A stretch of DNA of 64,000 nucleotides from NCBI RefSeq assembly GCF_020745735.1, contig NC_083435.1:11005201-11069200 (forward strand), given 5' to 3'. The notes under the pieces were generated by a model. The model was not told where the DNA came from. It saw nothing but the letters and a program-made list of their open reading frames with translations, and did no database searches. Every line of letters begins with the position of its first letter. Within the stretch, counting starts at the first letter, position 1. The position numbers and the translations under genes are program-made. The DNA is from Hemiscyllium ocellatum (taxonomy: Eukaryota). This document shows, piece by piece, positions 34,291 to 64,000 of the stretch.

Positions 34291-34322
34291 ACTTCTTGAA
34301 AAACGTTCTCAGAGTCTGTCAC

Positions 34323-38464: not shown

Positions 38465-41400
38465 GGAATCTCTTCTGAGGTAGAAGGGACCTGTACAAGA
38501 AGGATAGATTGCACCTGAATTGGAAGGGAACTAATATACTTTATTCGAGCTGCTTGGGAGGATTTAAACTAGTAAGGTGAGGGGGTGGGAACCAGGGAAA
38601 CAGTGAGGAAAGTGATCAATCTGAGACTGGTGCAGTTGGGAAAGGGAGCAAGTCAAACAGGGCAAGAAGGAACAAAGTAGAGAAGAAGGTACGACTGTTA
38701 AATGTAATGGCATTTGCTTCAATGCAAGAGGCCTAACGGGGAAGGCAGATGAACTCAGAGCATGGTTAAGAACATGGGTTTGGGATGTCATAGCAATCAC
38801 AGAAACATGGCTCACAATGGACAGGACTGGCAGCTTAATGTTCCAGGATACAAATGCAATAGGAAGGACAGAAAGGGAGGCAAGAGAGGAAGGGGAGTGG
38901 CATTTTTGATATGGGATAGCATTATTGCTAATTTAAGGAAGATATTACTGGGAATGCATCCAGGCAAGTTATTCGGGTGGAACTGAGAAATAAGAAAGGA
39001 ATGATCACCTTATTGAGTTTGTATTATTGACCACTAATAGTTAGTGGGGAATTGAGATATAGATTTGTAAGGAGATTTCAGTTATCTGTAGGAATAATCG
39101 GGTGGTTATGGTAGGGGATTTCAACTTTCCAAACACTGGGACTGCCATAGTGTTAAGGGTTGAGATGGAGAGGAATTTGTTAAGTGTGTACAACAAAATT
39201 TTGTGATTCAGTATGTGAATGTTCCGACTCGGGAAGGAGCAAAACTTGCCCTACTCTTGGAAAGTAAGGGAGGGCAGTTGACTGAGGTGTCAGTGGGAGG
39301 AGCACTTTGAGGCCAGAGACCATAATTCTATTAGTTTTAGAATAGTGATGGAAAAGGATAGACCAGATCTAAAAGTTGAAGTTCTAAATTGGAGAAAGGC
39401 CAATTTTGATGATAATAGGCAAGAACTTTTGAAAACTGATTGGGGGCAGATGTTCTCAGGTAAAGGAACGGCTGGAAAATGGGAATCCTTCAGAAATGAG
39501 ATAACGAGAATCCAGAAAAAGTATATTCCTGTTAGAGTGAAAGTAAAGGCTGGTAGGGAAAAGTAGGGAATGCTGGATGACGAAAGACATTGAGGGTTTG
39601 GTTAAGAAAAAGAAGGAGGCATAAGGATGATATAGAAAAGATAGATTAAGTGATTCCTTAGAGAGTGTAAAGATAGTGTTAAGGGTTTAGATGGAGAAGA
39701 ATTTGTTAAGTGCATACAAGACAATTTTCTGATTCAGTATGTGGATGTACCTGTTGAGAAGGTGCAAAACTTGACCTACTCTTGGGAAATAAGGCAGGAC
39801 AGGTGACTGAGATATCAGTGGGGGAGCACTTTGGGGCCAGAGACCGCAATTCTATTAGATTTAAAATAGTGATGGAAAAGGGTAGACCAGATCTAAAAGT
39901 TGAAGTTCTAAATTGGAGAAAGGCCAATTTTGACGGTATTAGGCAAGAACTTTTGAAAGCTGACTGTGGGCAGATATTCACAGGTAAAGGGATGGCTGGA
40001 AAATGGGAAGCCTTCAGAAATGAGATAATGAGAATCCAGAGAAAGTATATTCCTGTTAGGGAGAAAGGAAAGGCTGGTAGGTATAGGGAATGCAAGATGA
40101 CTAAAGAAATTGAGGATTTTGTTAAGAAAAACAAGGTAGCATATGTAAGGTATAGACAGGCTAGATGAATGAATCCTTAGAAGAGGAAATACGAAGTAGG
40201 AGTATATTTATACGGGATATCAGGAGGTCAAAAAGGGGACATGCGATAGCTTTGGCAAATAGAATTAAGGAGAATCCAAAGAGCTTTTACAAATACATTA
40301 AGAACAAAAGGGTAACAAGGGAGAAAATAGAGCCCCTCAAAGATCAGCAAGGTGGCCTTTGTGTGGAGCCGCAGAAAATGGGGAGATACGAAATTAGTAT
40401 TTTGCATCAGTATTTACTGTCGAAGAGGATCTGGAAGATATAGAGTGTAGGGAAATAATGGTGACATCTTGCAAAATGTCCATATTACGGAGGAGGATGT
40501 GCTGGATGTCTTGAAATGGGTGAAGGTGATAAATCCCCAGGCCCTGATCAGGTGTTGTGGGAAACGAGGGAAGTGATTCCTGGACCTCTTGCTGAGATAT
40601 TTGTATCATCGATAATCACAGGTGAGGTGCTGGAAGACTTGGTTGGCTAATGTGGTGCCACTGTTTAAAAAGGGTGGTAAGGACAAGCTAGGGAACTATA
40701 AACCAGTGATCCTGATGTCGGTGGTGGCCAGGTTGCTGGAGGAAATCCTGAGGGACAGGATGTACATGTATTTGGAAAGGCAAGGACTGATTAAGGATAC
40801 TCAGCATGGCTTTGTGCATGGGAAATCATGTCTCACAAACTTGATTGAATTTTTTGAGGAAGTAACAAAGAGGATTGATAACAGCAGAGTGGTAGATGTG
40901 ATCTATATGGACTTCAGTAAGGCCTTTGAGAAGGTTCCCCATGGGAGACTGATTAGCAAGGTTAGATCTCACAAAATACAGGGAGAACTCACAACTTAGA
41001 TACAGAACTGACTCAAAGGTAGAAGACAGAGGGTGGTGGTGGAGGATTGCTTTTCAGATGGGAGGCCTGTGACCAGTGCAGTGCCAAAGGATCGGTGCTG
41101 GGTTTTCTACTTTTTGTCATTTACTTAAATGATTAGGATGCGAGCATAAGAGGTACCGTTGGTAAGTTTGCAGATGACACCAATATTGGATAGCGAAGAG
41201 GGTTACCACCGATTACAACAGAATCTTGACGAGATGGGCCAATGGACTGAGAAGGGGCAGATGGAGTTTAATTCAGATAAATGCGATGTGCTGCATTTTG
41301 GGAAAGCAAATCTTAGCAGGACATATACACATAATGGTAAGGTCCTAGGGAGTGTTGCTGAACAAAGAGACGTTGGAGTGCAGGTTCATAGCTCCTTGAA

Positions 41401-42075
41401 AGTGGAGTCGCAGGTAGCTAGGATAGTGAAGAAGGCGTTTGGTATGCTTTCCTTTATTAGTCAGAGTATTGAGTACAGGAGTTAGGAAGTCATGTTGCAG
41501 CTGTACAGGACATTGGTTAGGCCACTGTTGGAATATTGTTTCACAATTCTGATCTCCTTCCTATCAGAAAGATATTTTGTAACCTGAAAGGGTTCAGAAA
41601 AGATTTACAAGGATGTCGCTATGATTGGAGGATCTGAGCTACAGGGAGAGGCTGAACAGGCTGAGGCTATTTTCCCTGTAGCATCAGAAACTGAGGGGTG
41701 TCCTTATAGAGGTTTCCATAATTATGAAGGGCATGGAAAGTGTAAATAGGAAAAGACTTTTCCCTGGGGTGGGGGAGTCCAGAACTAGAGGGCATAGGTT
41801 TAGCGTGAGAGGGGAAGATATAAAACAGACCTAAGGGGCAACCTTTCAAACAGAGGGTGGTATGTGTATGGAATGAGCTGCCAGAGGATGTGGTGGAGGC
41901 TGGTACAATTGCAACATTTTAGAGGCATTTGGATGGGTATATGAATAGGAAGGGTTTGGAGGGATATGGGCTGGGTGCTGGCAGGTGGGACTAGATTGGG
42001 TTGGGATATCTGGTTGACATGGACGGGTTGGACCGAAGGTTCTGTTTCCATGTTATATGTCTCTGTGACTCGATG
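38465..42075 (+). mobile_element. Near-full-length decayed CR1-like LINE with internal duplication (about 39130-39670 vs 39670-40200)
   Basis: Endonuclease, linker, RT fragments (ORFs 38762, 39782, 40622, 41159) and 3' tail. Lies in the IgV-IgC intron of gene B. Confidence 0.9.
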
Positions 42076-43213
42076 ACTCTATGTATGTTTGCAATATGAA
42101 AGCAAAGGGCCAAATGCAGGAAAATAGGATTAGAATAGTTACCTGCTTGTTATTGAATGGGGCAGATGGACCAAAGGCCCTTTATGCAAAGCCAGCCTCG
42201 ATGACTGCATTCCACCAGATGAATTGTGGGAAACAAAGAACTTAATGCAGAGAAGAGCTGGAGTGGTCCATTCAATCCCAGATGCCTGTCCCATTACTCA
42301 ATGTGATCATTGCTAATTCTCCACCTCAACTCCAAATTCCCACTCTTTCCACATGTTCTTTATATTACCTCAGCTTCCAAAAATATATTAATCTCTTTCT
42401 TAAATATATTTAATGTCTGGCCATCCCTGACTGAGGATGAAAAGACATGCCCCAAGTGTGGGTGCACGGGATTGATCAAGAGGATTGCTCTGTGAGCATT
42501 GATTGGACTGTTCTGTCCTTTCTAGGGGATAGACTTGTGAGAGGTGAAAGCATTCTGGTAGGATTTGAGAGGAACAGGAGCAGGTAATTCAGCTCCTCAA
42601 GCCTATTACAGTATTCTGTGAGATCATGGCTGATCTGTGGCCTCACTCACTGCCTTTGGCCAATATCCCTCAATCCATCAAAAAGTTAGTCTATCACAGA
42701 ATAAAAATAGGGTCTACATGGAGAGTTTGTTTCTCATGCTGACTGAGCTAAAACATCTTCTACTCCAGGGCTCTGGAAATACTCAGTATGTGAACACTCA
42801 CCTCAGAAATCTTTTCATTCCTGGTATTCAGGGATGTGAGGAGAGGACCTTGAATGTGGAAGTAAAATTCAAATCAGCCATAATAGTGAAATAAAATTAA
42901 AATATTGAACTGTGGGTCAGCTTGGAGGGACCGAATGGTCTTTTCTCACTTCAGTGGAATGAGACAGTGAGTCATAGGTTCCCAACGCTCTGAGTGAAGA
43001 ATTATCCCCCTGTCTCAGTGATAAGTGACCATCCCCTTATCCTGAAACTGCGTCCCCGTGTTCTAGATACTTCCATCAGCAAAAACAGCCTCTCAGGGTC
43101 TATCCTGTCAGATCGATTTGCATTCTGCTGGATTCTGACTCAATGTTTATCCTTCACCTCAATAACCTGTCCCTGAGGAGGTCAGCTAGTGTGTTTACAA
43201 AATGGTCACTGAC

Positions 43214-43588
43214 CTGTCACATCTAGCGTGAGTACAAACTCATCGGTCTTGATGCCAGAAGCAACGAAGCACTTGTACTGTCCCCTGTCAGAGACTCGGA
43301 CATCATTCAGCCTGAGAGAGATATTCCCCTTTGCCACTTCATCGAGAAACAGTTCAGTTCGGCCTCTGTAGACCAAGTGCTGGGATGCCAACGCGTCTGC
43401 TCCTTCTGTGTACAAGTGGACAGGTGAGCTATAGCCATAGACCACGTTGATCCAGCGGACCTCCATATTCTTTGGGACTTTGGTCATGACCAAAACACAG
43501 TCCAGGACCACACTGCCCCCAACAACCCCAGTGATGGGGGATAATGGTCCCTTCAGCTCTAAATCTCCCGCTGTTTCTGTAGGAATCA
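43214..43588 (-). CDS. BTN-like gene B, IgV exon
   Basis: 375 nt, ctctctccag / G|GTCAGT, phase 1-1. Both V-set cysteines, the Trp and the D.G.Y.C motif are intact. Confidence 0.95.
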
Positions 43589-43809
43589 CTGGAGAGAGAA
43601 TCAGATTGATTGGTCATAACTCAGGCTATTACAGCTGTATATTAATGTTTGGAACAGAGAAAGGGGGCGAGGCTGGGGGACAGAGAATGATCGAGGGAGC
43701 AACAGGAGCAACGAAGGATGGAGATGTAGAGGGAGAGATAAAGAGAGATAATGACAGATAGGAGGGGCAGGGAGGGATATATACAGAAATGGGGAACAGA
43801 GGGACATGA

Positions 43810-44400
43810 AAATTCAGAGAGTCATAGAGTTGTACAGCACTGAAACAGACCCTTTGGTCCAACTTGTCCATGCCGACCAGATATCCTAAATTCATCTGAT
43901 CCCATTTGTCAGCACTTGGCCCACATCCTTCAAATCCCTTCATATTTATATGCCCATCCAGATGTCTTTTAAATGCTGTAATTGTACTAGCCTCCACCAC
44001 TTCCTCTGGCAGCTCATTCCATAATAGCACTGCCTTTTGCATGAAATAGTTGCCCTTCAGGTAAATTTTAAATTTTTACCCTCTCAGCCTTAACCTCTGC
44101 CCTCAAGTTCTGGACTTACCCGACGCAGGAAAAAGACATTGTCTATTGCCCCTCATGACTTTATAAACCTTTATAAAGTCACTCCCCAGCCTCTGATGCT
44201 CCAGGGAAAATAACCCCAGCCTGCAGCCTCTCCCTCTCGCTCAAACCCTCTAACATTGGCAACATCCTTGTAAACTTTTTCTGAACCCTTCCAAGTTTCA
44301 TGACATCCTTCCTACAGAAGGGAGACCAGAATTGCACACAATAAGCCAAAAGTGGCCGAACCAATGTATAGTACCAACGTGAACGACCAACTACCTACAC
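43810..44400 (-). mobile_element. CR1 3' fragment
   Basis: ORFs 43629-44042 and 44179-44364 (VQFWSP..RKDV.KL.RVQK.FTRML). Confidence 0.8.
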
Positions 44401-44744
44401 TCGATGCTTTGACCAGTAAAGAGGGACAAAGAGTGAGTGGTAGAGAGGGACAGAAAAAAGTGAAGAATAGAGAAACACAGGGAGGAAAAACAGACAAAAA
44501 CTAAATTATTTTGCGTTCTTATTTCACCTGTCACATTTTCAGAATATTTTAATATTGCCTAGTCTGAAACACAACAGACAGTTTATTCTTTGTAAGGTAC
44601 CAAATAGAACAATGAGGTATAAGGCTGGATACCCTTTTTTAGTGTCTTAACATTCACCAGAGGACAGATGAGGCCAGTGTCTGATGGCTCAAATATCTAC
44701 AAATATTGGCAACTCTAACTTTGCAGCATCTTCTCAGTACTGAC

Positions 44745-44880
44745 CTTATCACAGTGAAGTATTCCCTCAGTACTGGCACTATGACAGTGAAATATTCTCC
44801 CAGTACTGACCCTATGACAGTGAAATATTCTCCCAGTACTGACCATATGACAGTGCAGCACTCGTCAACACTGACCTTCC
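44745..44880 (+). repeat. About 33-bp tandem repeat (CAGTACTGACC.TATGACAGTGAAATATTCTCC) x3-4
   Basis: Directly visible. Confidence 0.85.
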
Positions 44881-45017
44881 AATAGTGCAATATGCACTCA
44901 AACTAAACCTCTGACATTGCAATAGTCCCTTGGTAGCAAGGGAATCCACCCAGATTACATATTCAAATCTCTAGTGTGAGTACTGATTTTTAGTATTTTT
45001 GAAATTCATTTCCCTAC

Positions 45018-45057
45018 CATGAAAGATCCAAATGAGAACCTGGAGCAGAAGAAACAT
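45018..45057 (-). CDS. BTN-like gene B, signal-peptide coding exon (MFLLLQVLIWIFH + G)
   Basis: ATG at 45057 (agaATG), donor G|GTAGGG, putative acceptor ttttagacag at 45111. Paralog of 9206-9245. Confidence 0.85.
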
Positions 45058-45904: not shown

Positions 45905-46790
45905 CCAGATGATTTGAGTTCTGCAGTTGCTGAGATATCATTGATAGTCACAGGTAAAGTGCCGGAAGACTGGAGGTTAGCAAATATGGTGCCACTATTT
46001 AAGGAAGGTGGGAAGGACAAGCCAGGGAATTATAGACCAGTGAGCCTGATGTTGGTGGTGGATAAGTTGTTGGAGGGAATCCTGAGGGACAGGATTTACA
46101 CATATTTGGAAAGGCAAGGACTGATTAAGGATGGTCAACATGGCTTTGTGCATGAGAAATCATGTCTGACAAACTTGATTGTGTTTTTTGAAGAAGCAAC
46201 AAAGAGGATTGATGAAGGTAGAGTGGTGGACATGATCTAGTTGGACTTCAGTAAGGCATTTGACAAGATTCCCATGGAAGATTGGTCAGCATGTTTAGAT
46301 CTCATGGAATACAAGGAGAACTAACCAGTTGGATACAGAACTGGCTCGAAGGTAGGAGAACTAACCAGTTGGATACAGAACTGGCTCGAAGGTAGAAGAC
46401 AGAGGGTGGTGGTGAGAGTTGTTTTTCAGACTGGAGACCTGTGACAAGTGGTGTGCCACAAGGATTGATGCTGGACCAACTACTTTTCATTATTTATAGA
46501 AATGATTTGGATGTGGACATAGGAGGTATAGTTAGTAAGTTTGCAGATGACACCAAAATTGGAAGTGCAGTGGACTGCGAGATAGTTACCTCAGATTACA
46601 ACAGGATCTTGATCAGATGGGCCAATGGACTGAGGCGTGGCAGATGGAGTTTAATTTAAATAAATGTGAGGTGCTGCATTTTGGAAAAGCAAATCAGAGC
46701 AGGACCTATACTCTTAATGGCAAGGTCCTACACAGTATTGCTGAACAAAGAGACCTTGGAGTGCAGCGTCATAGTTCATTGAAAGTTGGA
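45905..46790 (+). mobile_element. CR1-like LINE RT fragment (gene B intron 1)
   Basis: ORFs 45914-46240 and 46441-46659. 40-bp internal tandem duplication at 46315-46394. Confidence 0.9.
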
Positions 46791-47703: not shown

Positions 47704-48911
47704 GCAACGACTGTCTTATATGTAAAACCTCTCGTCACCCACACAAACGATATCATCCGACCCAAAACAAAACCTTGATTGTTGGAAATCAAAAACAGAA
47801 ACTGCTGGGAAAGGGACTGAGCAAGTCTGGCAGCATGTGCAGAGAGAATTCCGAGTTCATTTTCGGATCAAGTGACATTTCTTCAGTTCAGAACCTGCTG
47901 AGTTTTTACAACAATTTCTGTATTTGTTAGCAACTCTATAAGCTCCTGAATAAAACTGACAGCCTCTCGTAGAATTTACATCGCACTTTTCATCACATCC
48001 TAAAGCACACGAAGTACATCTGAAGTGTAGTCCATGTTGGAATGTGGGAAATAAGGCAGGCGATCAGTGCACGGCAAGATCCCATGAACACTTCTTCGGA
48101 GAGTCAGTGTACACCTGTTGGGCCGAGTGGCCTGTTTCCACACTGTAGGGATTCTATTTTACTCCATCATTGTTATTCTGTTGATTGACGGATAAATATA
48201 TTGACCAGGTCATCCCTGCTACTCTTCGAAACAGCGGCCATGGGATCTTTTAGGTCGATCACATCGCCAAAAGGTCAAATGGGATTTTGAATAAAGTCTC
48301 ATTGATCACAGCGCACTCCCTCAGTATTGCACTGCGATGTCAGTCTGTGTTTTTATGGTCATGTCCTGGAATGGGATTTGAACCCACAACCTCCTGATGC
48401 AAAGGAGGGAGTGACAATACTCGATTCACTGCTAATCCTGGGCCAGCTACCGGCCTTCCCGAACCTGTGCACTAGTCCCCAGAACCTGCTCCTTTTCCAA
48501 TCTGGAGGGAGGGGCAGGGGGTTTCGCGTATTAATTTGACTTCCTTTACTTTAAGATGCGGTTTCTGTTGTAAAGTGGGGAGTCCTTATCAACCTGGGAC
48601 TATTCCAGCCATGGAACGGGAATCCATTTGGAGCTGGGAACACCCGTACTCCCCTTTCCCACACCGGACCAGACGGGTTGATATTTACCTTCCCTGTCCC
48701 CGGGAACCCCCTCTCCCATTCACCCAGACTCTGAACCTTTACCCTCCCACAGCCAGGCCTCCCAGTCTCTTGGCCGGGCCTCTGTTCGGTTCCGGGAATG
48801 AGCCTCCACTCCCCCCCGGGACTGAGTATAAGATCCAGGAGCTCCCCACCGACAGGGAGATCGGAGTCAATTACACTGAAACTGAGGAGCTGAAATTACT
48901 CCCAAACTCAC

Positions 48912-49183
48912 CCAGAAAGGAAAATCCAAAATTCGGGAAGAGTAATACAGAGCAGCAGCGATCAGAGCCCTTCAGTTTCTACTTGATATCGTCTGCACTC
49001 CTCATCTCCACAAATGAACAAGCGGAACATATTCGGGCGTCAACCTCATAAACTGTGGGAGGACAAAGTTCAGAGTTTGATCCAGAGAACTTTGAGCTCA
49101 GCTTTCATTAGTTTTTGTTTCCCCTGTAATGCTCCTGCACCCTCTGTAACACTGCAATATTGAAACGTTTGTTCAAATCCCTG
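48912..49183 (-). promoter_or_regulatory. Gene B exon 1 and promoter (degenerate ISRE, no kB site)
   Basis: Homologous to 13690-13925. Donor TGG|GTGAGT at 48911. ISRE reads GAAACTGAAG (48970-48979). The kB-containing segment is deleted. Confidence 0.55.
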
Positions 49184-50774
49184 CAGCAACACCATCCTAT
49201 CCCATTGCTAAAAGTCCCCAATCCTACAACACTGTCTTAAATCTGCTCCCCCACCCCCCTCTCCCGCACCCTCCTTCGTACCCTCCCTGGTGTGATCACA
49301 CCCTTTCTGGGAGGAGTCCAAAGAGTTATGCACAAAGTCCTCTGTAACCTCACGAAAGGTTTCTACAGTGATAATTTCCCTGTTTTGACACGCTGGGATA
49401 TGGTAAAGGAAGTGTCCCTTCCTTAGACATACCGAATGAATTGGTAGGGAATAGAGGGGTGCGTAACATGTAGAGACAAAAGAGATCTTTGTTTGGAATG
49501 GCATCATGTCTTGCTATGCCGAAGGGCCTGTTATTGAGTTGTAATGTCCTTTGTGCTTTGTTCGTTACCTTATAACCACCAGCCCTGCCGCCTGCAAGGA
49601 TTTGTGAATAAGCAAACAAAGCGCCCTCTGCTCTGATCCGAAGAAACGTCACTGGATCAGAAATATTTGACTCTGCTTTCTCTGTGCAGATGCTGCCCGG
49701 TGCAGACCCCGGATGTCTCCGAATGGAACCTATTTGCCGCTGTTCGTTCCCCGGCTCTCCGACTTCACAGAGGCAATTTAATCTGAACTGTCTTTCAAGG
49801 GGCTTAAGGGGCTGGGTGCAAGGCGATTTCACATTCTGTCCGTGTTTCCCTCTCATTGAATTCTCGAAACCAGCGTTCCTCTGGGATTCCTGGACAGAAC
49901 CAACTCGCGAACCAATCTGCACCACTTTTCTCTGAATGTTGTGTTGGTTTGAAATTTAGCATTCTTGCATTTGTCCTGAAGGAGTCGCAGATGAAAACAT
50001 TCAGAGACAGATCTCCCTTCTCAGGCTAACCGTGCAGTGTTGAATACAGCTGGTTGCTGTTTATGGTCCAGTGATATTGGTAGCAGCATGGATTGTTTTG
50101 AGCAAACAGGTTCATGCTTGAGCTGTTGCACAGCCTCTTAAAAAAAACCTCAGCACTGGTCAATGGAAATTAGTCCTTTCCATGATTCAGGCTTGCCTCT
50201 GTTAAATAAAATGTGAATAAAGCAGCAGAAGTAATTTGAAGGAATCCAATAATATCTGAGCATGCACAACTCAGTGATATTACATGGTCACTTGTGATAA
50301 GAACTGTAATGTTGTGCAGATGAGATAGAAGCTTAAGAACCAAAATTCAGAAGAGTAACATTCAATCCCTAATGGGCATGAGAGAACGAGTTGGCATTTA
50401 CAACAAGTATCATCACGATAAATGATTCCAGATATTTACAGCTAAACTGAGATTCTCAAATTCCCATTTGTTATTTAAGCTCACATACTCTTATTAGATC
50501 AGGCCTTTGAATTAATAAAATAACACTATGTTAAAGTGAAGAGGTAAATATAGGAACAAAGGTACTGGGGTAGGCAATTCAGCCTCTTGATTTGTTCCAA
50601 CATTCAATGAAATCATGGCTGATTTATGGCCTAACTCCATATAGCTGTCTTTCATCAATACCCCTTAGTACCCTTGTTTAACAAAACTGTAGCGATCTCA
50701 GAGTTAAGTTTAACAATGATCCTGCATTCACTGGCATTTGTGAAAGAGAGTTCTAACATCTACCACCCTTTGTG

Positions 50775-51118
50775 GTGACATGGTGGCTCAGTTGTTAGCA
50801 TTGCTATCTCCCAGCATGAGGGAGCTCAGGTTGATTCCAAACTTAATGAACTATCTGTGTGATGTTTGCACGTGCTCCTTGGGTTTGCATGGGTTTCCTC
50901 CAGAGGCTCCAGTATTCCTCCCACAGTCCAAAGATGTGCAGGTTTGGTGGATTGGCCGAGCTAAATTTCCCATAGTGTCCAGAGATGTACAGGTTGATGC
51001 TTTAGTCATAGGAAATGAAAGGAAATGGGGGTAGGTCTTGCTAGGATGCTCCTTGGACAAACGTTGTGGACTCGATTTGCAGAATGGCCTGCTTTCACAC
51101 TTTTGGGATTCTATGATT
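50775..51118 (+). mobile_element. Diverged HE1-related SINE
   Basis: A/B-box remnants, central domain, short TTGTG duplication. Absent from the paralog near 19400. Confidence 0.75.
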
Positions 51119-51950
51119 GTGTAGTACTGCCAAACATTTCTCTTGGACTGTTCTGTCCTAAGTCTCAGGCTCTGCCCATTACTATGAGAATCCTCAAATA
51201 GTTTCTCGGTACCTACCCTTTCTTTTCCCATGAATATTCTGTGAGGGAAATGTTTGAATTGGGAAATTGGAGATAGAAAAGTAAGAGGGAGCAGTATGCT
51301 CATTCAGTATCGTTCTCTGTCCACCTCTCTTTATCTCTCCCTCACAACTCAGGAACAACCCAGGCCTGGAGAGATTAATTTATATTTTATGAACCTTCCC
51401 TTTAAAACCAGGCTTCTGTTTTTGTTTTTCACTTCTTTGTGTATGATGTTACAGAACATACATAAGAACAAAGGAACACTCGAGGACTTGGTCTCCACAG
51501 CCTTCTATGGTAATGAGTTCCAAAGATTGAGCAACCTCTGGTTCAAGAAACACCTTCTCATCTCAGTTTAAAGGTTCGTTCCTTCCCTGAGGCTGTGCCC
51601 TGTCTCCCATGTCTCCCAAAAGTGAAAACATTTTCTCCACCTCCACTCTGTCCAGGCCTCTCAGTATTTTCTAAGTTTCAAACAGATACCACTTCATTCT
51701 TCAAAACTCCATCACATACAGACTAAGTGTCCTCAACTGCATCTCATATGGCACATGCTTCAACCCCAGGATCATTTATCTAATCCTCTGTGGACACCCT
51801 CCAAGATCAATACATCCTTCTTTAAAGATGAGGTCCAAAACTGTTCACTTTATCACTGAAATGTTGAATGATCAATTGAAATGTTGAATGATCAATAGGG
51901 AAAGAGGCTGGTTGGCCCATAGAGTTTGTGTTGACCCATTACTAGAGTAA

Positions 51951-52040
51951 GAGCTGAAAATGTGTTGCTGGAAAAGCGCAGCAGGTCAGGCAGCATCCAA
52001 GGAACAGGAGATTCGACATTTCGGGCATAAGCCCTTCTTC
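51951..52040 (-). mobile_element. 90-bp Penelope terminal fragment with 7-bp TSD AGAGTAA
   Basis: TSD at 51944-51950 / 52041-52047. Absent from the paralogous spacer near 21.77 kb. Confidence 0.85.
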
Positions 52041-52494
52041 AGAGTAATTCACCCACATACATTGCAATGAATTATGTTGGTCAGATCATGTTGATTTTTG
52101 CCGTCCTGGCCATATACATTTTATACCTTCATGGATCCAACATAGAGTCTGGGCACTGAGTGTTTGCACTGCAATTTAAAGGCTGCTCTACTGAGCTTGA
52201 CTGTTCCTGCTCTGAGTCTGCTACATTTCCGTCTCTCAGATTACCTATTGTCTGCCTCTCAGTAAATGCTGTAAACTCTTTTTTAAGCATTCTGAGATGC
52301 AGAATTTTGATTATAGCTCTCTGGCAATGTTCTTCTAGTCCCGTTTATGCCAATTCTCAATAGCATGTCTGTCTAATATCACACTAAATTACCATAAGCA
52401 TTTTCAATCCCATAAAGCTGAGATTTCCTTCCGACAGAATTTCAAGGAATGAATTCCAGATCCCAATGTCTCGCTATTCATGAAAGGCTAATGC

Positions 52495-53405
52495 TGCTGT
52501 TGCTTTTGATTAATTTGATGATCACTTTAAGTTATAGAGTCATAGAGATGTACAGCACGGAAATAGACCCTTCATTCCAACCCATCCATGCCTACCAGAT
52601 ATCCTAAATTAATTTAGTCCCATTTGCCACCACTTGGCCCATGTCTCTCTAAACCCTTCCTATTCATATACCCATCTAGATGCCTTTTAAATGTTGTAAT
52701 TGTACCAGTCTCCACCACTTCCTCTGGCAGCTAATTTCATAGCAATTACAGAAATGTGGTTCTGGGATGGACAGATCTGGCAGCTTAATACAAATGCCAA
52801 AGGAAGGACAGAAAGGGGAACAAGACAGCCCATCTGTTCTTGTTACGAACATTTCTGTTAAAACAAGCAGAGTCTCACTCGTCCTCTATTTTGTCCAGCT
52901 CCATGATAATTTTGAACAAAACTTGTAAATCTCTTTTCAAGTATGTCACCAGGGTTGGAGGGTTTGAGCTGTAGGGAGAGGCTGAATACAATGGGGCTAT
53001 TTTCCTTGCAGCATCAGAGGCTAAGTGGTGACCTTATAGAGGTTTATAAAATCATGAGGGACACGGATAGGAGATACAGACAAGACCATTTCCCTGAGAT
53101 GAGTGAGTCCAAAACTAGAAGGCATAGATTTAAGGTGAGATGGGAAAGATTTAGAAGGTACCTAAGGGGAAACACTTTCATGCAGAGGGTGGTGCATGTA
53201 TGCAATGAGCTGCCAGAGGAACTGGTGGAGGCTAGTACAATGACAAAATTTGAAAGGCATCTGGATGGGTGTGTGAATTGGAAGGGTTTAGAGGGATGTG
53301 GGCCAAGTTCTGGAAAATGGGACAAGATTAATTTAGGATATCTGGTCAGCATGGACAAGTTGGACTGAAAGGTTTGTTTCTGAGCTGTGCATCTCAATGA
53401 TTCTA
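52495..53405. mobile_element. CR1 3' fragments (minus about 52495-52740, plus about 52940-53405)
   Basis: ORF 52943-53368 and tail ctgtacatctctatgactct-like. Confidence 0.8.
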
Positions 53406-53914
53406 TGATTGCATATATATCAAAAGTTCAGCACTCCTGCAACTCACCTACAGGAAGCATCACTAAAACTCATGCCATTTGAAACATACCCATTCAATGT
53501 CACCCAGAAGAAAAAAAATTACATTCAAAGAGTAAAAAAAACTGTAGATGCTGGAAATCAGAAGCAAAAGCAGAAATTGCTGGAAAAAGCTCAGCAGGTC
53601 TGGCAGCATCTGTGGGAAGAGTAACAGAATTAATGTTTTGTGTACAGTGACCCTTCATCAGAACAATGAAGAAATCATTTTTATATTCTCATTGTCATTT
53701 CATTCCACGGACTTCAATGATACTTCTAATTCTTTAAAGTGACAATTTTTCCAATACCTCTTCAAATCTAGAAATACATTCACATCTCAATCCCAACAGT
53801 GCCTCCATTAGAAGGCTCAATCTATTTAGCTAAAGGTGATTTGGTTTTAACAAACCCACACTGTTTTCCTCAATTAAACCACACTTGCTTAACTCTGTCC
53901 AAGATATTCCTAAA

Positions 53915-54421
53915 TGATCTAGAAGAGGGCACTGTTGGTTTATGAGGATGTTGCCTGGTATGGAAGGTGCTAGCTATGAAGAGAGGTTGGGTAGGTTAGG
54001 TTCATTTTCACTAGACAAACGGAAATTGAGGGGGGGACCTGATTGAGGTTTACAAAATCATGAAGGGTATAGACAGGATGGATAGAGACAAGCTTTTTCC
54101 CAGGGTGAAGGATTCAATAACAAGAGGTCATGCTTTCAAGGTGAGAAGTGGAAAGTTTAACGGGGATACATGCGGCAAGTACTTCACGCAGAGGGCAATG
54201 GGCATTTGGAATGCATTGCCAGCAGAGGTAGTCGAGGCAGGCACGGGAGATTCATTTAAGATGCGACTGGACAGATGCATGAGTAGGTGGGGAGCAGAGG
54301 GATACAAGTGCTTAAGAATTGACTGACAGGTTTAGAGAGTACATTTGGATCGGCTCAGGCTTGGAGGGCCTGAAGGGCCTGTTCCTGGGCTGTAAATTTT
54401 CTTTGCTCTTTGTTCTTTGTT
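53915..54421 (+). mobile_element. 5'-truncated CR1-like LINE with short TSD CTAAA
   Basis: ORF 54060-54326. Flanks are contiguous in the paralog near 24515-24525. Confidence 0.8.
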
Positions 54422-54624
54422 CTAAAAGTCTCCATCACTGAGGTCGATCTCACTGAGTTGTTGATGCTTGACTTACACTTACACTTGTTTTGAACATGCT
54501 GAAGCATTTACGATTTTGCAAAATTATAACATTTCAATCTTATGACTCCTAGTCTCATTATACCCGCATCATCGATTCTCCTGCTCCTTGACTGCTTGCT
54601 GTGCTTTTTCAGCATCGCATTCTA

Positions 54625-54930
54625 GGGGTGGCGTGGGGGCTCAGCAGTTAGCACTGCTTCCTCACAGCATCAGGGTCCCAGGTTCAATTCCAGCCTTGGG
54701 TAACAATCTGTGTGGAGTTTGCACATCCTCCCCCTGTTTGCATGGGTTTCCTCTGGGTGCTCTGGTTTCTTCCCACACTCCAAGGATGTGCAAGTCAGGT
54801 GAAGTGGCCATGTTAAATTGTCCATAGTGTTAGGTGCGTTAGTCAGAGGGGAGTGGGTTAATCTTTGGAGGATCGTTGTGAACATGGGCCGAAGGGCCTG
54901 TTTCCACACTGTAGGGAATCTAATCTAATC
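54625..54930 (+). mobile_element. HE1-type SINE
   Basis: B box GGTTCAATTCC, central domain, (CTAAT)n tail. Confidence 0.85.
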
Positions 54931-55629
54931 TCACTTATAGTAATACCACCCCAGTTAAAGAGCCCCAAGAGAGCTTCCTATTCAAATGTAACATAGATTC
55001 CCAAATACATCGGAATTCCTTCACTCCAATTTTATTTCACTTAATTGGACAATATTCACAGACCTGAGCAAAATAAGTCATTTCTCATTGTTATTTAACC
55101 ATTTGTGGGAAAGACATTACTGCAGCATGGTAAGAGTTTGAATAAAATGTCTTTGACATTTTTAGTACGATGACAAGAAACAACCCGAACGAAAACAAAT
55201 GATGAAACGCCCAGTGGTCCTGGCAGTATGAGAATGACACGAGCTCCCTGCCAGAGTGCACATTGAAGGGAGCCGGGCATCACAGCAGCTGCTGGTCACT
55301 CAGTTCCTGTCCCCTCATCCCAAAAGGAAATCTGAGACTCCCCTCTGAAAACAGAAGAATTGCCCAATATGGTGAAGATAAGATTTTGGGAGGTTTGTGA
55401 GTGGAAATCTTTATAGCTGCTACTGCAGGAATAACATTCACTCCAGGATATTAGTAGAAAACGGGACAATTGTTTCTCCATTCAACTCTTCAAACTGTCT
55501 TCACCACTTCTCTGTCTCTGCCTTGCTGGGAAGTGATTTGGTGTCCCAATGGAAAGACTGCATTGTCCCTGCAGTGAAATGATTTGGTGTTCCCTGGAAA
55601 GACTGCACTGAACCCAGTCTGAGAACCAG

Positions 55630-56975
55630 TGACTGATTCATCTCCAGTATATCATTCAACCAGTTTATTTGGAAGCCGTCGCTTTCCAGGCGATGCTCCT
55701 TCATCAGGTGGTTGTGGAACTGAACAATAGGACACGGAATTTATTGCAAAAGATGACAGTGTCATGCAATGGAAATGATATTTTGAACAAACTAGATTGT
55801 TGTTAAGTCTTCCATCTTTTAGAATGAGTTGTAGGTTTCGGTTCATTAACATGTAAATCCCAGAAATTTTTTTCAATCACATTCTCGAGATAACTCAAGG
55901 TATATTTAAAAAGAAAGATGACAACTGAACTCGGACAATGCATTAAAGGTGTGAGGTTAGAGTCAGTCTGTATCCCATCTTGAGTCAGACTGGTTCTATT
56001 TCCAAAGTGGAATTTACAAAATACTACATGGATTGATGACTGCATTGACTGCCAGCAGATTATGCATTTTCTGAGCAAAATAGAATCTATCTCCAAATAT
56101 AATTCTATACATAGAAATTCGCCCCACAGACATGTCTGGCTGTGTGCACGCAGGAGAGAGAGAGAGAGAGAGAGAGAGCGTGTGTGTTTGCATGTGTGCA
56201 AGCTTGGTGAAGTGGGTGTGTGAGTGTGACGGGGTATAAGCCTGCAACAGGGAACCTGCGTGGATGTGTATAGTAGGTGTGTGAATGAGAGAGTTTGTAT
56301 GTATGAGAGTGCCTGTGAGAGTGTGTGAGTATGTAACAGTGTGTGTGTATTTGTGCTTGTGTGTGAAAGAGAGCGTATCATGTGGTGGGATCACCTGTAG
56401 TGTGACATGAACCCTGGGTCCCGGTTGAGGCCATTCTCATGGGTACCAAGCTTAGCTATCAGCCTCTGTTCAGCCACTTTTGCTGTGGCCTGTCTGAAGT
56501 CTGCCTTGGAGGATGGTCACCTGACAATCCGAAGCCAAACATCTCTGACTGCTGAAGTGTTGCCGGACTGGGAGGGAACAGCCCTGTCTGGCAATTGTTG
56601 CGCGGTGTCCATTCATCCATTATTGTAGCGTCTGCATGATCTCGTCAATGTACCATGTCTCGGGGCATCTTTGCATGCAGCGTGTAAGGTAGACAACATT
56701 GGCCAAAGGCAAGGATGCCTTGAGGCATGGGACATTGGCAAGACCATGCAGACACTACAACAACGGACGAATGGACAATGCGCAATAATCAGCAGCATGG
56801 GTGTTCCTTCCCAGTCAGCAAATACTTCAGCGGTCAGGAACATTTGGCCTCGGATCTTTGGGTGACCATCCTCCAAGGCTGACATTGGGGCAGCAACAGG
56901 GCAAAGCAGCCAAAAAGAGGCTGACAGCCAAATTCAGTACCCATGAGGATGGCCTCACCCTGGACCTTGTTTTTT
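55630..56975 (-). mobile_element. Decayed Penelope-like element of a second family, with inverted GIY-YIG segment
   Basis: 56410-56680 and 56715-56975 are inverted homologs. HHR remnant CTGATGAAGGAGC..GAAAGC at about 55675-55710. Contains (GA)n/(GT)n. Confidence 0.6.
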
Positions 56976-58615
56976 GGATCATTGGAATCTCTTTTGGGGT
57001 AGAAGTGACCTGTACAAGAAGGACCAATTGCACCTAAATTGGAAGGGGACTAATATGGAAGTTTGCTCGAGCTGCTCGAAAGGATTTAAACCAGTAAGTT
57101 GGTGGGGGGTGGAGAGGAGGGCGGGTGCAGTGAGGAAAGATATCAATCTGAGACTGGTACAATTGAGAACAGAAGAGAGTCAAACAGTTAAGGCTGGCAG
57201 GAACAAAGTAGGACTAATAAGTTAAACTGCATTTATTTCAATGCAAGGGGACTAAAAGGGAAGGCAGATGGACTCACAGCATGGTTAGGAACATGGAACT
57301 AGGAACTCAGGTTTTGTGCATGAGAAATCATGTCTGACAAACTTGATTGAGTTTTTTGAAGAAGTAACAAAGAGGATTGATGAAGGTAGAGTGGTGGACA
57401 TGATCTATTTGGACTTCAGTAAGGCATTTGACAAGGTTCCCCATGGAAGATTGGTCAGCATGTTTAGATCTCATGGAATACAAGGAGAACTAGCCAGTTG
57501 GATGCAGAACTGGCTCGAAGGTAGGAGAACTAGCCAGTTGGATACAGAACTGGCTTGAAGGTAGAAGACAGAGGGTGGTGGTGAGAGTTGTTTTTCAGAC
57601 TGGAGACCTGTGACAAGTGGTGTTCCACAAGGATTGGTGCTGGGCCGACTAGTTTTCATTATTTATAGAAATGATTTGGATGTGGACATAGAAGGTATAG
57701 TTAGTAAGTTTGCAGATGACACCAAAATTGGAAGTGCAGTGGACTGTGAGATGGTTACCTCAGATTACAACAGGATCCTGATCAGATGGGCCAATGGACT
57801 GAGGCGCGGCAGCTGGAGTTCAATTTAAATAAACGTGAGGTGCTGCATTTTGGAAAAGCAAATCAGAGCAGGACCTATAGTCTTAATGGCAAGGTCCTAC
57901 ACAGTATTGCTGAACAAAGAGACCTTGGAGTGCAGCGTCATAGTTCATTGAAAGTTGAGTCGCAGGTAGATAGGATAGTGAAGAAGCTGTTTGGTATGCT
58001 ATCCTTTATTGATCAAATCATAGAGTTTAGGCGTTAAGACGTAATGCTGCAGCTGTAGAGGGCATTGGTTAGGCCACTTTTAGAATACTGTGTGCAATTC
58101 TGGTCTCCTTCCTCTGGAAGGTTGTTGTGAAACATGAAATGGTTCAGTAAAGATTTACAATGATAGTACCAGGATTGGAAGAATTGAGTTATAGGGAAAA
58201 GCTGAATAGACTGGGGCTGTTTTCCATGGAGCTTCGGAGGCTGAGGGGTCACCTTAATGAGGTTTATGAAATCACGAGGGGCATGGATAGGGTAAATAGA
58301 CAAAGTCTGTTCCCTGAGGTGGGGGAGTCCAGAACTCAAAGGTGTAGGTTTCAGGTGAGAGGGGTAAGATATAAAAGAGACCTAAAGGGCAACCTTTTCA
58401 CGCAGAGGGTGGTGCGTGTATGGAATGAGCTGCCAGAGGTGGAGGATGGTACAATTATAGCATTTGACAGACACCTGGATGAGTATTTGAATGGGAAGGG
58501 TTTAGAAGGATATGGGCCAAGTGTTGGCAAATAGGTTGGGATATCTAATTGGCATGGACAAGTTGGATTGAAGGGTCTGTGTCCATGCTGTATATCTCTG
58601 TGAGTCTCTAACTGC
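56965..58615 (+). mobile_element. CR1-like LINE, internally deleted
   Basis: 5' remnant joined to the RT region at about 57310, then tail. Same 40-bp duplication (57484-57563) as the 46.3-kb copy. Confidence 0.9.
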
Positions 58616-59227
58616 CTGATATGCAAACTCCCTCCAAGTTATCCACAGAAGCGATAACGTCTCTCCAACACTAATCCTTCAAAAACAAATGAACTGCTAA
58701 TGCTGGAAATCAGAAACAAAAACGAAAATTGCTGGAATAGCTCAGCAGGTCTGGTAGTACAGATTTAGGGATAAAATCTCATTGATCAGAGCGCTCCCAA
58801 TACTGCAGCACACCCTCAGTAGTGCACTGGGGTGTACAGTCTGGGATTTTATGGTCAAGTCCTGCACAAGTTAACTTTTTTTCAGATGCGGTCACTGTTG
58901 TAACTTAGGGACACTAGTTCAGTGAAACTTGGGACCATCCCAGTCATGGAGCGGGAATCCGTTTGGCGCTGGGAACACTCAGAGTCTCCTGTCTCACACG
59001 GGACCAGATGGGTTGATATTTACCCTCCCTGTCTCCGGGAACCCGCTCTCCCCTTCACTCAGGCTCTGTGGCCCTTCATCCTACCACAGCCCGGCCCTCC
59101 CATTCCCCGGGGCCGGGTCTCTGTTCGGTTCCCGGGCTGAGTGTGTGATCCAGGGGCTCCCCACAGAAAGGGAGACCGGAGTTAATTCCACCGAAACTGG
59201 CAGGAGCTGAAATTATCCCCAAACTCA

Positions 59228-59511
59228 TAGTGGGCGGCACGGCGGTTAGCACTGCTGCCTCACAGCGCCAGAGATCCGGGTTCAACTCCCGCCTCAGGCG
59301 ACTGTCTGTGTGGAGTTTGCACATTCTCCCCGTGTCTGCGTGGGTTTCCTCCCGCAGTCACAAAGATGTGCGGGTCAGGTGAATTGGCCATGCTAAATTC
59401 CCCGTAGTGTTAGGTAAGGGGCAAATGTAGGGGTATGGGTGGGTTTCGCTTCGGCGGGTCGGTGTGGACTTGTTGGCCTGTTTCCACACTATAAATAATC
59501 TAATCTAATCA
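59228..59511 (+). mobile_element. HE1-type SINE inserted at the unit C exon-1 donor
   Basis: Splits caaactca|.ccagaaag, which is contiguous at 13681-13697. Confidence 0.9.
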
Positions 59512-59562
59512 TCCAGAAAGAAAACTCCATAATTTGATACCAAAGGAGCAGCGATCAGTGCC

Positions 59563-59779
59563 TTTCAGTTTCTATTTGAGGTCACCTCTGTCTCCCTTTT
59601 TGTAACTTTATGAGCGAGAATTTTGAGGGCGTTAACCTCATAAACTGTGGAAGAACAGTTGTGTTTCAGAGTTTAACACGGAGAATCTTGAGCTGAGCTT
59701 TCACCAGTTTACCTGCGTGTCTTCTGTAATATTGCAACACTGAAATGTTTGTTCAACTTCCTGCCCCCTCGGGAATCCC
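59563..59779 (-). promoter_or_regulatory. Unit C promoter: intact ISRE (59563-59572) and NF-kB site (59771-59779)
   Basis: Same motifs, order and similar spacing as the gene A promoter. Confidence 0.55.
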
Positions 59780-59859
59780 GCTCAGGTTAATTTCCACCAT
59801 TTGCTGTTTCAAGGAAAGAAAGGTCTCCCCCACACACGCTCTCTTCCCCTGATTCACCC

Positions 59860-61200
59860 AATGATACCCCCTTAAGTATATTCCTACTGCCTTTATACTC
59901 TCCTGAGGATTTACTCGATTTCTGCTGTCTATCCCTGACATTTACTTTCTTCTTTCTCTGAACCAAACCCTCAATTTCTGTCATCATCCCGCATTCCAAA
60001 CACCTACCAGACTTTTCTTTCATACTAACAGGAATGTACTGTCTCTGCAGTCTCGTTATTTCTGAAGGCTTCCCATTTTCCAGCCCTCCCTTTACCTGCA
60101 AACAGCTGCCCCAGCTTATGAAAGTTCTTGCCTTATACCGTCAAAATTTGTCTTCCTCCAACTTAGAGCTTCAATTTTCAGGTCCTGTCTATCCTTTTCC
60201 ACCAGTATTTTTAAATTTATAAAATTATGGCCGCGGGCCCCAAAGTGCTTCTCTGCTGACACCTCAGTCACCTGTCCTGCCTTATTTCCCATGAGTAAGT
60301 CAGGTTTTCACCTTCTCTAGTGGGTACATCCACACACACAGTCAGAAAACTTTCTTGTACACACGTAACAAATTCCTCTCCACCTAAACCCTTAAAACTA
60401 TGGGCAGTTTTAGTCTATGTTTGGAAAGTTAAAATCCCCTACCATAACCACCCTATTATTCTTACAGATAGCTGAAATCTCCCGACAAATTTGTTTCTCA
60501 ATTTGCCGCTGACTATTAAGGAGTTAATAATCCAATCCTAACAAAGTGATCGTCCCAGTCTTATCTCTCAGTTCCACCCAAAAACGTTCCTGGATGCATT
60601 CCCAGGAATATACTCCCTCAATGCAGCAGTAATAATATCCCTTATCAAAAACACCATCCCCCTCCTCCCTTGCCCTCCCTTTCTATCCTTCCTATAGCAT
60701 TGGATCCAGGAACATTAAACTGCCAGTCCTGTCCATCTCTGAGCCACACTTCTGTTATTGCTATGATATCCTAGTCCCATGTTCCTAACCTTACCCTGAA
60801 TTCTTCTACCTTCTCTGTTAGGCCTCTTGCATTGAAATAAATGCAGTTTAATTTATCAGTCCTACCTTATTCTCTACTTTGTTCCTTCCTGCCCTGACTG
60901 TTAACTCACTCCCTTTCCCAACTGTACCAATCTCAGATTGATCTCTTTACTCACTATTTCCCTGGTTCCCACCCCCTCACCTTACTAGATCAAATCATCC
61001 TGAGCAGCTTGAGCAAATCTTCCTGCCAGTATATATTTGTCCCCGTCCAATACAGGTGCAATCGATCCTTCTTGTAAAGGTCACTTTTACCCCAGAAGAG
61101 ATTCCAGTGATCAAAAATGTGAACCTTTCTCCCATGCACCAACTCTTCAGCCAAGCGTTCATCTGCTCTATCCACATATCCCTACTCATACCAGCTTGTA
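59860..61200 (-). mobile_element. CR1-like LINE fragment (esterase/endonuclease region)
   Basis: Reverse complement matches 38470-39600 and 16000-17200. Abuts the Penelope 3' end at 61205. Confidence 0.8.
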
Positions 61201-61204
61201 GCAC

Positions 61205-63122
61205 AGCTGCAAATGTGTTGCTGGTCAAAGCACAGCAGGTTAGGCAGCATCTCAGGAATAGAGAATTCGACGTTTCGAGCATAAGCCCTTCATCAGGAAT
61301 AAGAGAGAGAGAGCCAAGCAGGCTGAGATAAAAGGTAGGGAGGAGGGACTAGGGGGAGGGGCGATGGAGGTGGGATAGGTGGAAGGAGGTCAAGGTGAGG
61401 GTGATAGGCCGGAGTGGGGTGGGGGCGGAGAGGTCAGGAAGAGGATTGCAGGTTAGGAGGGCGGTGCTGAGTTGAGGGAACCGACTGAGACAAGGTGGGG
61501 GGAGGGGAAATGAGGAAGCTGGAGAAATCTGAATTCATACCTTGTGGTTGGAGGGTTCCCAGGCGGAAGATGAGGCGCTCCTCCTCCAGCCGTCGTGTAG
61601 TTGTGTTCTGCCGGTGGAGGAGTCCAAGGACCTGCATGTCCTCGGTGGAGTGGGAGGGGGAGTTAAAGTGTTGAGCCACGGGGTGATTGGGTTGGTTGGT
61701 TCGGGCGGCCCAGAGGTGTTCTCTGAAGCGTTCCGCAAGTAAGCGGCCTGTCTCACCAATATAGAGGAGGCCACATCGGGTGCAGCGGATGCAATAGATG
61801 ATGTGTGTGGAGGTACAGGTGAACTTGTGGCGGATATGGAAGGATCCCTTGGGGCCTTGGAGGGAAGTGAGTGTGGAGGTGTGGGCGCAAGTTTTACATT
61901 TCCTGCGGTTGCAGGGGAAGGTGCCGGGGGTGGAGGTCGGGTTGGTGGGGGGTGTGGATCTGACAAGGGAGTCACGAAGGGAGTGGTCCTTGCGGAACGC
62001 TGATAGGGGAGGGGAGGGAAATATATCCTTGGTGGTGGGGTCCGTTTGGAGGTGGCGGAAATGGCGGCGGATAATACGTTGTATGCGCAGGTTGGTGGGG
62101 TGGTAGGTGAGAACCAGTGGGGTTCTGTCTTGGTGGCGGTTGGAGGAGCGGGGCTCAAGGGCGGAGGAGCGGGAAGTGGAGGAGATGCGGTGGAGGGCAT
62201 CGTCGATCACGTCTGGGGGGAATCTGCGGTCCTTGAAGAAGGAGGCCATCTGGGCTGTGCGGTGTTGGAATTGGTCCTCCTGGGAGCAGATGCGGCGGAG
62301 ACGAAGGAATTGGGAATATGGGATGGCGTTTTTACAGGGGGCAGGGTGGGAGGAGGTGTAGTCCAGGTAGCTGTGGGAGTCAGTCGGTTTATAGTAAATG
62401 TCTGTGTTGAGTCGGTCGCCCGAGATAGAAATGGAAAGGTCTAGGAAGGGGAGGGAGGAGTCTGAGACAGTCCAGGTGAATTTCAGGTCGGGATGGAAGG
62501 TGTTAGTAAAGTTGATGAACTGTTCAACCTCCTCGTGGGAGCACGAGGCAGCGCCGATACAGTCATCGATGTAGCGGAGGAAAAGGTGGGGGGTGGTGCC
62601 AGTGTAGTTGCGGAAGATGGACTGTTCCACATATCCTACGAAGAGGCAGGCATAGCTGGGGCCCATGCGGGTGCCCATGGCAACTCCTTTAGTTTGGAGG
62701 AAGTGGGAGGATTGAAAAGAGAAGTTATTCAGGGTGAGGACCAGTTCAGTCAGTCGAAGGAGGGTGTCAGTGGAAGGGTACTGGTTGGTGCGGCGGGAAA
62801 GGAAGAAGCGGAGGGCTTTGAGTCCTTCGTGATGGGGGATGGAGGTGTACAGGGACTGGATGTCCATAGTGAAAATAAGGCGTTGGGGACCGGGGAAGCG
62901 AAAATCCTGGAGGAGGTGGAGGGCGTGGGTGGTGTCCCGAACGTAGGTGGGGAGTTCTTGGACTAAAGGGGACAGGACCGTGTCGAGGTATTGGGAGATG
63001 AGTTCGGTGGGGCAGGAGCAGGCTGAGACAATGGGTCGGCCGGGGCAGGCAGGTTTGTGGATTTTGGGCAGGAGGTAGAAACGGGCGGTGCGGGGTTGTG
63101 GGACTCCCAGGGGATCTCCCAT
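61205..63122 (-). mobile_element. Young Penelope-like element, left arm (RT + GIY-YIG endonuclease; ORF 61434-63122, 562 aa)
   Basis: Uninterrupted ORF with FYLLPKIHK, GRPIVS, MDIQSLYTSIPH, GVAMG, RYIDD, LPFLD and IIYCIRC...YIGETGR...RFREH. 3' terminal region contains a hammerhead motif. 5'-truncated. Confidence 0.95.
61265..61300 (-). ncRNA. Minimal hammerhead ribozyme motif in the Penelope terminal repeat
   Basis: ATTC-CTGATGA-A-GGGC TTAT GCTC-GAAA-CGTC^GAAT: complete core, stem II, palindromic ACGT stem III, GUC cleavage triplet, 4-bp stem I. PLE-associated minimal HHRs are established. Activity untested. Confidence 0.7.
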
Positions 63123-64000
63123 CCACCGCCTCCAACCTCATAGTCCCACAACCCCGCACCGCCCGTTTCTACCTCCTGCCCAAAATCCACAAACCTGCCT
63201 GCCCCGGCCGACCCATTGTCTCAGCCTGCTCCTGCCCCACCGAACTCATCTCCCAATACCTCGACACGGTCCTGTCCCCTTTAGTCCAAGAACTCCCCAC
63301 CTACGTTCGGGACACCACCCACGCCCTCCACCTCCTCCAGGATTTTCGCTTCCCCGGTCCCCAACGCCTTATTTTCACTATGGACATCCAGTCCCTGTAC
63401 ACCTCCATCCCCCATCACGAAGGACTCAAAGCCCTCCGCTTCTTCCTTTCCCGCCGCACCAACCAGTACCCTTCCACTGACACCCTCCTTCGACTGACTG
63501 AACTGGTCCTCACCCTGAATAACTTCTCTTTTCAATCCTCCCACTTCCTCCAAATTAAAGGAGTTGCCATGGGCACCCGCATGGGCCCCAGCTATGCCTG
63601 CCTCTTCGTAGGATATGTGGAACAGTCCATCTTCCGCAACTACACTGGCACCACCCCCCACCTTTTCCTCCGCTACATCGATGACTGTATCGGCGCTGCC
63701 TCGTGCTCCCACGAGGAGGTTGAACAGTTCATCAACTTTACTAACACCTTCCATCCCGACCTGAAATTCACCTGGACTGTCTCAGACTCCTCCCTCCCCT
63801 TCCTAGACCTTTCCATTTCTATCTCGGGCGACCGACTCAACACAGACATTTACTATAATCCGACTGACTCCCACAGCTACCTGGACTACACCTCCTCCCA
63901 CCCTGCCCCCTGTAAAAACGCCATCCCATATTCCCAATTCCTTCGTCTCCGCCGCATCTGCTCCCAGGAGGACCAATTCCAACACCGCACAGCCCAGATG
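63113..64000 (+). mobile_element. Penelope-like element, right (inverted) arm; runs off the window
   Basis: Reverse complement of the left arm, 2 substitutions noticed in about 860 bp. Open RT frame DLPSTASNLIVPQPRTARF... Confidence 0.95.

Follow-up and report, generated by a model that had tools for sequence, protein, structure and literature searches.

We analyzed a 64,000-nucleotide stretch of the epaulette shark (Hemiscyllium ocellatum) genome, here called the window (assembly GCF_020745735.1, contig NC_083435.1, positions 11,005,201 to 11,069,200 of the forward strand; coordinates below count from its first nucleotide). The window contains two minus-strand butyrophilin-like genes, termed A and B, and a third unit on the same strand, termed C, that was found by comparing the window with itself by BLAST. 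Unit C was confirmed to be a gene unit that has kept an upstream block and a 3' untranslated region (3'UTR) with a poly(A) signal, and has lost its whole coding body. A hollow third butyrophilin unit had been described in an earlier reading of the sequence (the initial annotation), and this description stood: the 5' block and the 3' tail are collinear with A and B, and the coding exons were not found by tblastn. Judged from its sequence, unit C is probably a dead, hollowed-out member of a butyrophilin-like tandem array and most likely an inert remnant.

The following parts of unit C were recognized, together with an insertion that splits the 5' piece (K2P, Kimura two-parameter distance; SINE, short interspersed nuclear element; ISRE, interferon-stimulated response element).

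50616-53905, minus strand: downstream flank, six blocks collinear with the gene B flank at 19243-24511 (self-BLAST; K2P 0.27-0.36)
54957-55646 (690 bp), minus strand: 3'UTR remnant, aligning with the gene B 3'UTR at 25372-26001 (BLAST 69%, 75.5% ungapped, K2P 0.30)
58614-58879, minus strand: intron-1 residue, short repeat matches only
58880-59227 and 59509-59859 (about 700 bp), minus strand: 5' piece, aligning with A at 13291-14030 (K2P 0.19) and B at 48550-49184 (K2P 0.35)
58880-59227, minus strand: portion 3' of the predicted exon-1 donor (start of intron 1 in the model of the initial annotation), the best-kept part in A, B, and C
59228-59508, plus strand: tRNA-derived SINE of 281 bp, exactly at the CTGG/GTGAGT of A and B, where C reads CTGG-SINE-ATGAGT
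59509-59859, minus strand: upstream block that would comprise the promoter and a short exon 1; its IRF/ISRE-like (59562-59573) and kB-like (59771-59779) sites are identical to those of unit A

Because about 5 kb of downstream flank are collinear with that of gene B in six blocks, unit C is a true third tandem unit. The putative promoter block, the 3'UTR, and the six flank blocks have the same order and orientation as in A and B, as in a remnant of a duplicated gene. The 3'UTR homology begins about 205 nt past the position of the B stop codon and ends at 55646; the break that had been reported there is real, although it was originally placed at about 55630. The poly(A) signal, a minus-strand AATAAA at 55031-55036, was confirmed and occupies the same alignment position as the signal of gene B. 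A stray repeat was ruled out as the source of the 3'UTR match, which is single-copy in the window and has collinear flank beyond it.

On the 5' side, homology had been said to resume at about 58620. This position is the end of a long interspersed nuclear element (LINE; 58613), and the homology was found to be firm from 58880 and weak from about 58771. The weak collinear match (58771-58864) is to the SINE that A (13060-13110) and B (48291-48368) carry in intron 1, and between 58864 and 58880 C is about 165 bp shorter than A and B. The sequence from 58614 to 58770 could not be aligned to A or B. A solo long terminal repeat was ruled out as the origin of the promoter block, as the A-B homology runs past the block into intron 1. 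On its upstream side the block is bounded by an inverted LINE 5' fragment (59845-61117, minus strand), and with the LINE at 56972-58613 (plus strand) the surviving block is flanked by LINE fragments of opposite orientation. Within the conserved block, a 30-bp sequence is present three times in tandem in unit A (13421-13510) and once each in B and C.

A tblastn search with the exons of A and B had been suggested as a check of the initial annotation. Run locally, it gave no match to an IgV, IgC, transmembrane, or B30.2 exon in 49200-64000 (best E-value 0.05), while the identical queries matched A and B at E-values from 1e-12 to 1e-150. In the same interval the best E-value for the IgV and IgC exons was above 0.8, against 1e-46 to 1e-99 for the controls on A and B, and no match was found for B30.2, the best E-value being 1.5 within a Penelope-like repeat. 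An exact look-up of the open reading frame across the 55646 junction was without match. Unit C was therefore found without the IgV, BTN-type IgC, and PRY/SPRY exons that make up a butyrophilin gene.

The 5' piece of C has also lost both candidate splice donors. In A and B the block contains CTGG/GTGAGT, the best candidate for the exon-1 donor by prediction; in C this position is interrupted by the SINE and reads AT instead of GT. The second candidate, AAA/GTAAAT in A and B, lies at the far (3') edge of the 58880-59227 block and is lost in C. Neither A nor B contains the SINE, and its insertion therefore postdates the split of C and A. Compared with its two closest copies it has a K2P of 0.19-0.21 (positions 59294-59354 left out), of which about 0.13 falls on its own branch. 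This is as much as the whole C branch in the block, and the break of the donor is therefore old.

Alignment of the block among the three units gave 436 invariant columns, 113 B-specific, 46 C-specific, and 41 A-specific changes. These counts make C the sister of A, as in the tree ((A,C),B), with A and C on branches of equal length. The K2P in the block was 0.19 between A and C, 0.34 between A and B, and 0.35 between B and C, and the changes specific to C and A were evenly spread, with 23 vs. 19 upstream of the predicted donor and 23 vs. 22 downstream of it. Between B and C the block (0.35) was as divergent as the intergenic flank (0.27-0.36) and the 3'UTR (0.30), and between A and B it (0.34) was not below the introns (0.22-0.30). 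The block thus shows no sign of constraint and its divergence looks flank-like, or neutral-like, by rate tests that have low power for few constrained sites. As the block is not conserved overall, the equal branches of C and A say little beyond both drifting.

Within the block, the part 3' of the predicted donor (13291-13688 in A, 48550-48910 in B, and 58880-59227 in C) was better kept than the part with the kB and ISRE sites, 254 of 339 columns being invariant vs. 182 of 312. The B-specific changes were concentrated upstream of the donor (78 vs. 35). From this distribution, the better-kept downstream part may contain the actual core promoter or first exon.

Based on these comparisons we propose the following history. 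The array arose by duplication, with C as the sister of A in the upstream block. After the split of A and C, an internal deletion would have taken out all sequence between a point about 205 nt past the stop codon and the initial few hundred bases of intron 1, corresponding to about 22 kb in the present-day coordinates of gene B. The gap is now occupied by 3.2 kb of unrelated DNA, consisting of a LINE, a fold-back, a microsatellite, and unassigned sequence. An old SINE insertion also interrupts the upstream block at precisely the position of the predicted exon-1 donor. The remainder is presumably decaying at a neutral rate, and the kB-like and ISRE-like sites would be intact because there has been too little time for them to be hit, not because they are used.

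The 3.2 kb between the two ends of unit C was composed as follows.

55647-56416, no strand: filling segment without assigned origin, containing a single-copy part and a microsatellite; no Pfam match
55647-56120, no strand: unassigned single-copy filling (about 470 bp); no other window match at word size 7 and no Pfam match
56120-56400, no strand: decayed GA/GT microsatellite, read from the sequence
56417-56966, no strand: fold-back palindrome of 550 bp with its centre near 56691 and about 80% complementarity between the arms; single copy within the window; in form it resembles the fold-back Penelope-like element at 62001-64000, with which it shares no sequence similarity
56972-57304, plus strand: LINE 5' fragment, 76% match to 38465-38777 and 61117-60769
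57310-58613, plus strand (antisense to the gene unit): LINE fragment from the reverse transcriptase to the 3' end, with RVT_1 (Pfam)

The interval had been described as transposable element only. This is true of the LINE (56972-58613) but not of the microsatellite and the unassigned 470 bp, and only about half of the filling is demonstrably mobile element. With its 3' end (58613) the LINE adjoins what is left of intron 1, and its 5' end points to where the lost body had been. A deletion mediated by LINE insertion would, as a conjecture, fit this position of the 3' end, but 1.3 kb of other DNA lies between the LINE 5' end and the 3'UTR remnant. The LINE segment 57310-57957 of unit C is 96.3% identical (K2P 0.037) to 46142-46788 in intron 1 of gene B, in the same orientation, while the remaining LINE copies in the window are 74-79% identical. 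The copy in intron 1 of B (45927-46788) lacks the 3' end of the element and would be an unusual product of an independent insertion. The near-identical fragments may represent either a young subfamily or a recent transfer of a patch between C and B.

The share of sampled sequence words that were held by individual runs was used as a proxy for expression. Two runs, X17 and X21, are probable RNA and come from the same organism and sample as one of the DNA sets. They held 0.45 and 0.30, respectively, of the sampled words of the last exon of gene B, and gene B is therefore expressed in this sample. Of the sampled words of 54900-59900 they held 0.07 and 0.04. The DNA-like runs (three samples from two studies) held 0.39-0.60 of the words of the C region and 0.47-0.54 of those of the B last exon. 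A 4.6-kb RNA at a level near that of gene B is therefore probably absent from the X17 and X21 libraries. The initial annotation had suggested a long non-coding RNA (lncRNA) of about 4.6 kb that ended at the AATAAA at 55031-55036 and was largely antisense to a CR1 element. The signal is indeed retained, but four minus-strand AATAAA (58005, 57232, 55740, and 55664) lie ahead of 55031, and no more than 4-7% of the sampled words from the region occur in the RNA-like runs. The antisense claim was overstated, as the LINE makes up 36% of the proposed RNA. No Rfam family was found in 54900-59293.

Some observations weigh against unit C being inert. The kB-like site GGGATTCCC (59771-59779) and the ISRE-like site AGAAACTGAAAG (59562-59573) of C are identical to those of the intact unit A, and both are lost at these positions in the expressed gene B, which reads GGTGTTGCT and AGAAACTGAAGG. 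The C branch is not faster than the A branch, with 46 C-specific changes not above the 41 of A, and this would also fit equal constraint on both. The assignment of exon 1 and of the transcription start in A and B is itself a prediction. With 4-7% of the region words in the RNA-like runs, a transcript piece of up to about 0.6 kb is possible. By a rival reading the orphan block would still be active. It could serve gene B, which lies 10.6 kb downstream, as an enhancer responsive to NF-kB and IRF, or it could drive a non-coding RNA that is unspliced and in part antisense to the LINE, in a way known from human HCP5 (PMC6562477). The motifs identical to those of unit A, the number of C-specific changes, and the retained poly(A) signal at 55031 would agree with this reading. 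Gene B has at least four RefSeq accessions for one protein and hence transcripts that differ outside the coding sequence (CDS), which would agree with an active block as well. We nevertheless consider an active block quite unlikely: both candidate donors are destroyed, divergence is flank-like, four earlier AATAAA lie on the path, no Rfam family was detected, and the RNA-like runs hold 4-7% of the region words compared to 30-45% for the last exon of gene B, which is expressed with a consensus kB-like site of its own. The retention of the motifs is also within chance. Of the 9-bp windows of the block, 28% are identical between A and C, and of the 12-bp windows 19% are, so two intact motifs are unremarkable, and the longest identical runs lie elsewhere (59134-59164 and 59084-59109). 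If the sites of A are assumed to be constrained, the chance of finding those of C untouched is roughly one in four or five, and retention of both is compatible with chance. Taken together, no positive evidence was found for the proposed exaptation of the block as an inducible enhancer, an alternative promoter for B, or the source of a lncRNA.

In a second rival account, a larger deletion could have run from intron 1 of one unit across at least one whole unit into the 3'UTR of another, so that the promoter and the tail never belonged to one gene. Its breakpoint signature would equal that of a deletion within a single unit. The sister relation of A and C, which have B lying between them, suggests that blocks of several units were duplicated, and deletions between paralogues are known in this family from human BTNL8-BTNL3 (PMC3729544). 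However, the tail and flank of C differ from B by 0.27-0.36, like the promoter block (0.35), so both ends look like one and the same non-B type, and a single deletion in one unit is the simpler account. We regard such a chimaera as unlikely. It is highly improbable that the coding body exists and was collapsed or skipped in the assembly. The region is repeat-rich, but the window contains no N, the 3.2-kb filling is mostly single-copy or diverged with no junction of identical repeats, and the DNA-like runs hold the words of the C region about as well as those of the B last exon. An internal deletion within one unit, followed by decay of what was left, thus remains our preferred explanation for unit C.

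The two immune motifs had been described as a perfect kB and ISRE. Both are identical to those of A, but the kB-like site of C agrees with the 10-mer consensus GGGRNWYYCC at only 9 of 10 positions. Likewise, the motifs of gene B were said to be eroded, which applies to the two equivalent positions; B has a full-consensus kB-like site, GGGGGTTCCC, at 48702-48711 (minus strand). This site is present in B only, while the palindromic consensus site GGGGCTCCCC/GGGGAGCCCC is present in A (13614-13623) and C (59153-59162) only. The extra sites look like motif turnover within the block.

The coding exons of A and B that were located in the window are listed below.

5412-5846, minus strand: gene A, IgC exon
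8528-8932, minus strand: gene A, IgV exon
26220-26894, minus strand: gene B, PRY/SPRY exon (Pfam PRY 1.7e-24, SPRY 4.4e-25)
near 34312-34545, minus strand: gene B, transmembrane exon
35208-35645, minus strand: gene B, BTN-type IgC exon
43209-43613, minus strand: gene B, IgV exon

V-set and C2-set_3 were found in both A and B (Pfam), and by domain content the two are true IgV/BTN-type IgC/PRY-SPRY genes. Gene A extends past the start of the window, and its 3'UTR lies outside. The product of gene B was reached by a protein search begun from a horn-shark homologue and corresponds to the H. ocellatum RefSeq proteins XP_060706374 to -377 (492 aa, assembly GCA_020745735.1), the exons of which match the window at 95-100%. 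The recorded CDS spans 18,841 bp, or 26217-45057 of the window, the recorded range covering the CDS only. No other protein-coding gene is recorded within 10 kb on either side of the B CDS, a range that reaches only the 3' edge of unit C. An HMMER search of representatives returned only paralogues, with identities of up to 79%. At least four accessions (XP_060706374 to -377) encode one identical 492-aa protein, and gene B therefore has several transcript variants differing outside the CDS, possibly in their first exons. Isoform X2 is 469 aa.

Several features of unit C resemble known systems. In human HCP5, which is transcribed, spliced, and interferon-regulated, a fragment of HLA class I (promoter, leader, and intron 1) that carries kB and interferon-response sites is fused to an antisense ERV16 (PMC6562477). 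Unit C shares with HCP5 an immune-gene fragment bearing a putative promoter, followed by an antisense retroelement, and this was the design envisaged in the initial annotation. The parental kB and interferon-response sites are retained, as in HCP5, in a block that would be the promoter of A and B. Unlike in HCP5, the transcript of unit C is putative, both candidate donors are broken, and antisense LINE would account for no more than 36% of its 4.6 kb. In human, BTN3A genes are under the control of NLRC5, the class I transactivator (PMC7753138), so a module resembling that of class I is no novelty on butyrophilin genes either. LncRNAs have also been described as fossils of protein-coding genes (PMC5577775), and survival of a former coding locus as a non-coding transcription unit is the fate that had been proposed for C. 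Fossil lncRNAs are defined by transcription conserved across species, whereas for C this fate is a proposal from sequence. In the human BTNL8-BTNL3 deletion, which spans 56 kb, the 5' portion of one paralogue has become linked to the 3' portion of a second (PMC3729544). It resembles the event in C in being a deletion within a butyrophilin-family tandem duplication that joins a unit 5' part to a unit 3' part. In BTNL8-BTNL3, however, coding exons were fused into a new expressed protein, and the deletion is a polymorphism, whereas the event in shark unit C left no exon.

We find it improbable that the orphan block is a living interferon/NF-kB-responsive element, that is, a shark counterpart of HCP5 or a distal enhancer giving gene B an inducibility that its eroded sites lack. 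If it were, the reuse of promoters from dead immune genes would date back hundreds of millions of years. An active leftover promoter would give the finding more weight, but as an early-vertebrate parallel to the design of human HCP5 it would introduce no new principle; exaptation of this kind, if true, would be an idea with a known precedent.

Birth-and-death evolution of immune multigene arrays normally leaves gene fragments behind. Truncated unprocessed pseudogenes in tandem immune arrays are similar to unit C in their origin by tandem duplication, their collinear non-coding parts, the lack of an open reading frame, invasion by SINEs and LINEs, and neutral-like divergence. Most of them keep some exons, whereas C has lost all coding exons and yet keeps both transcript ends, the upstream block and the poly(A) region. 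Unit C documents birth-and-death turnover in a shark butyrophilin-like array through duplication, SINE disruption, and then, in the proposed order, loss of the gene body, and provides a dated example of how such arrays shed members.

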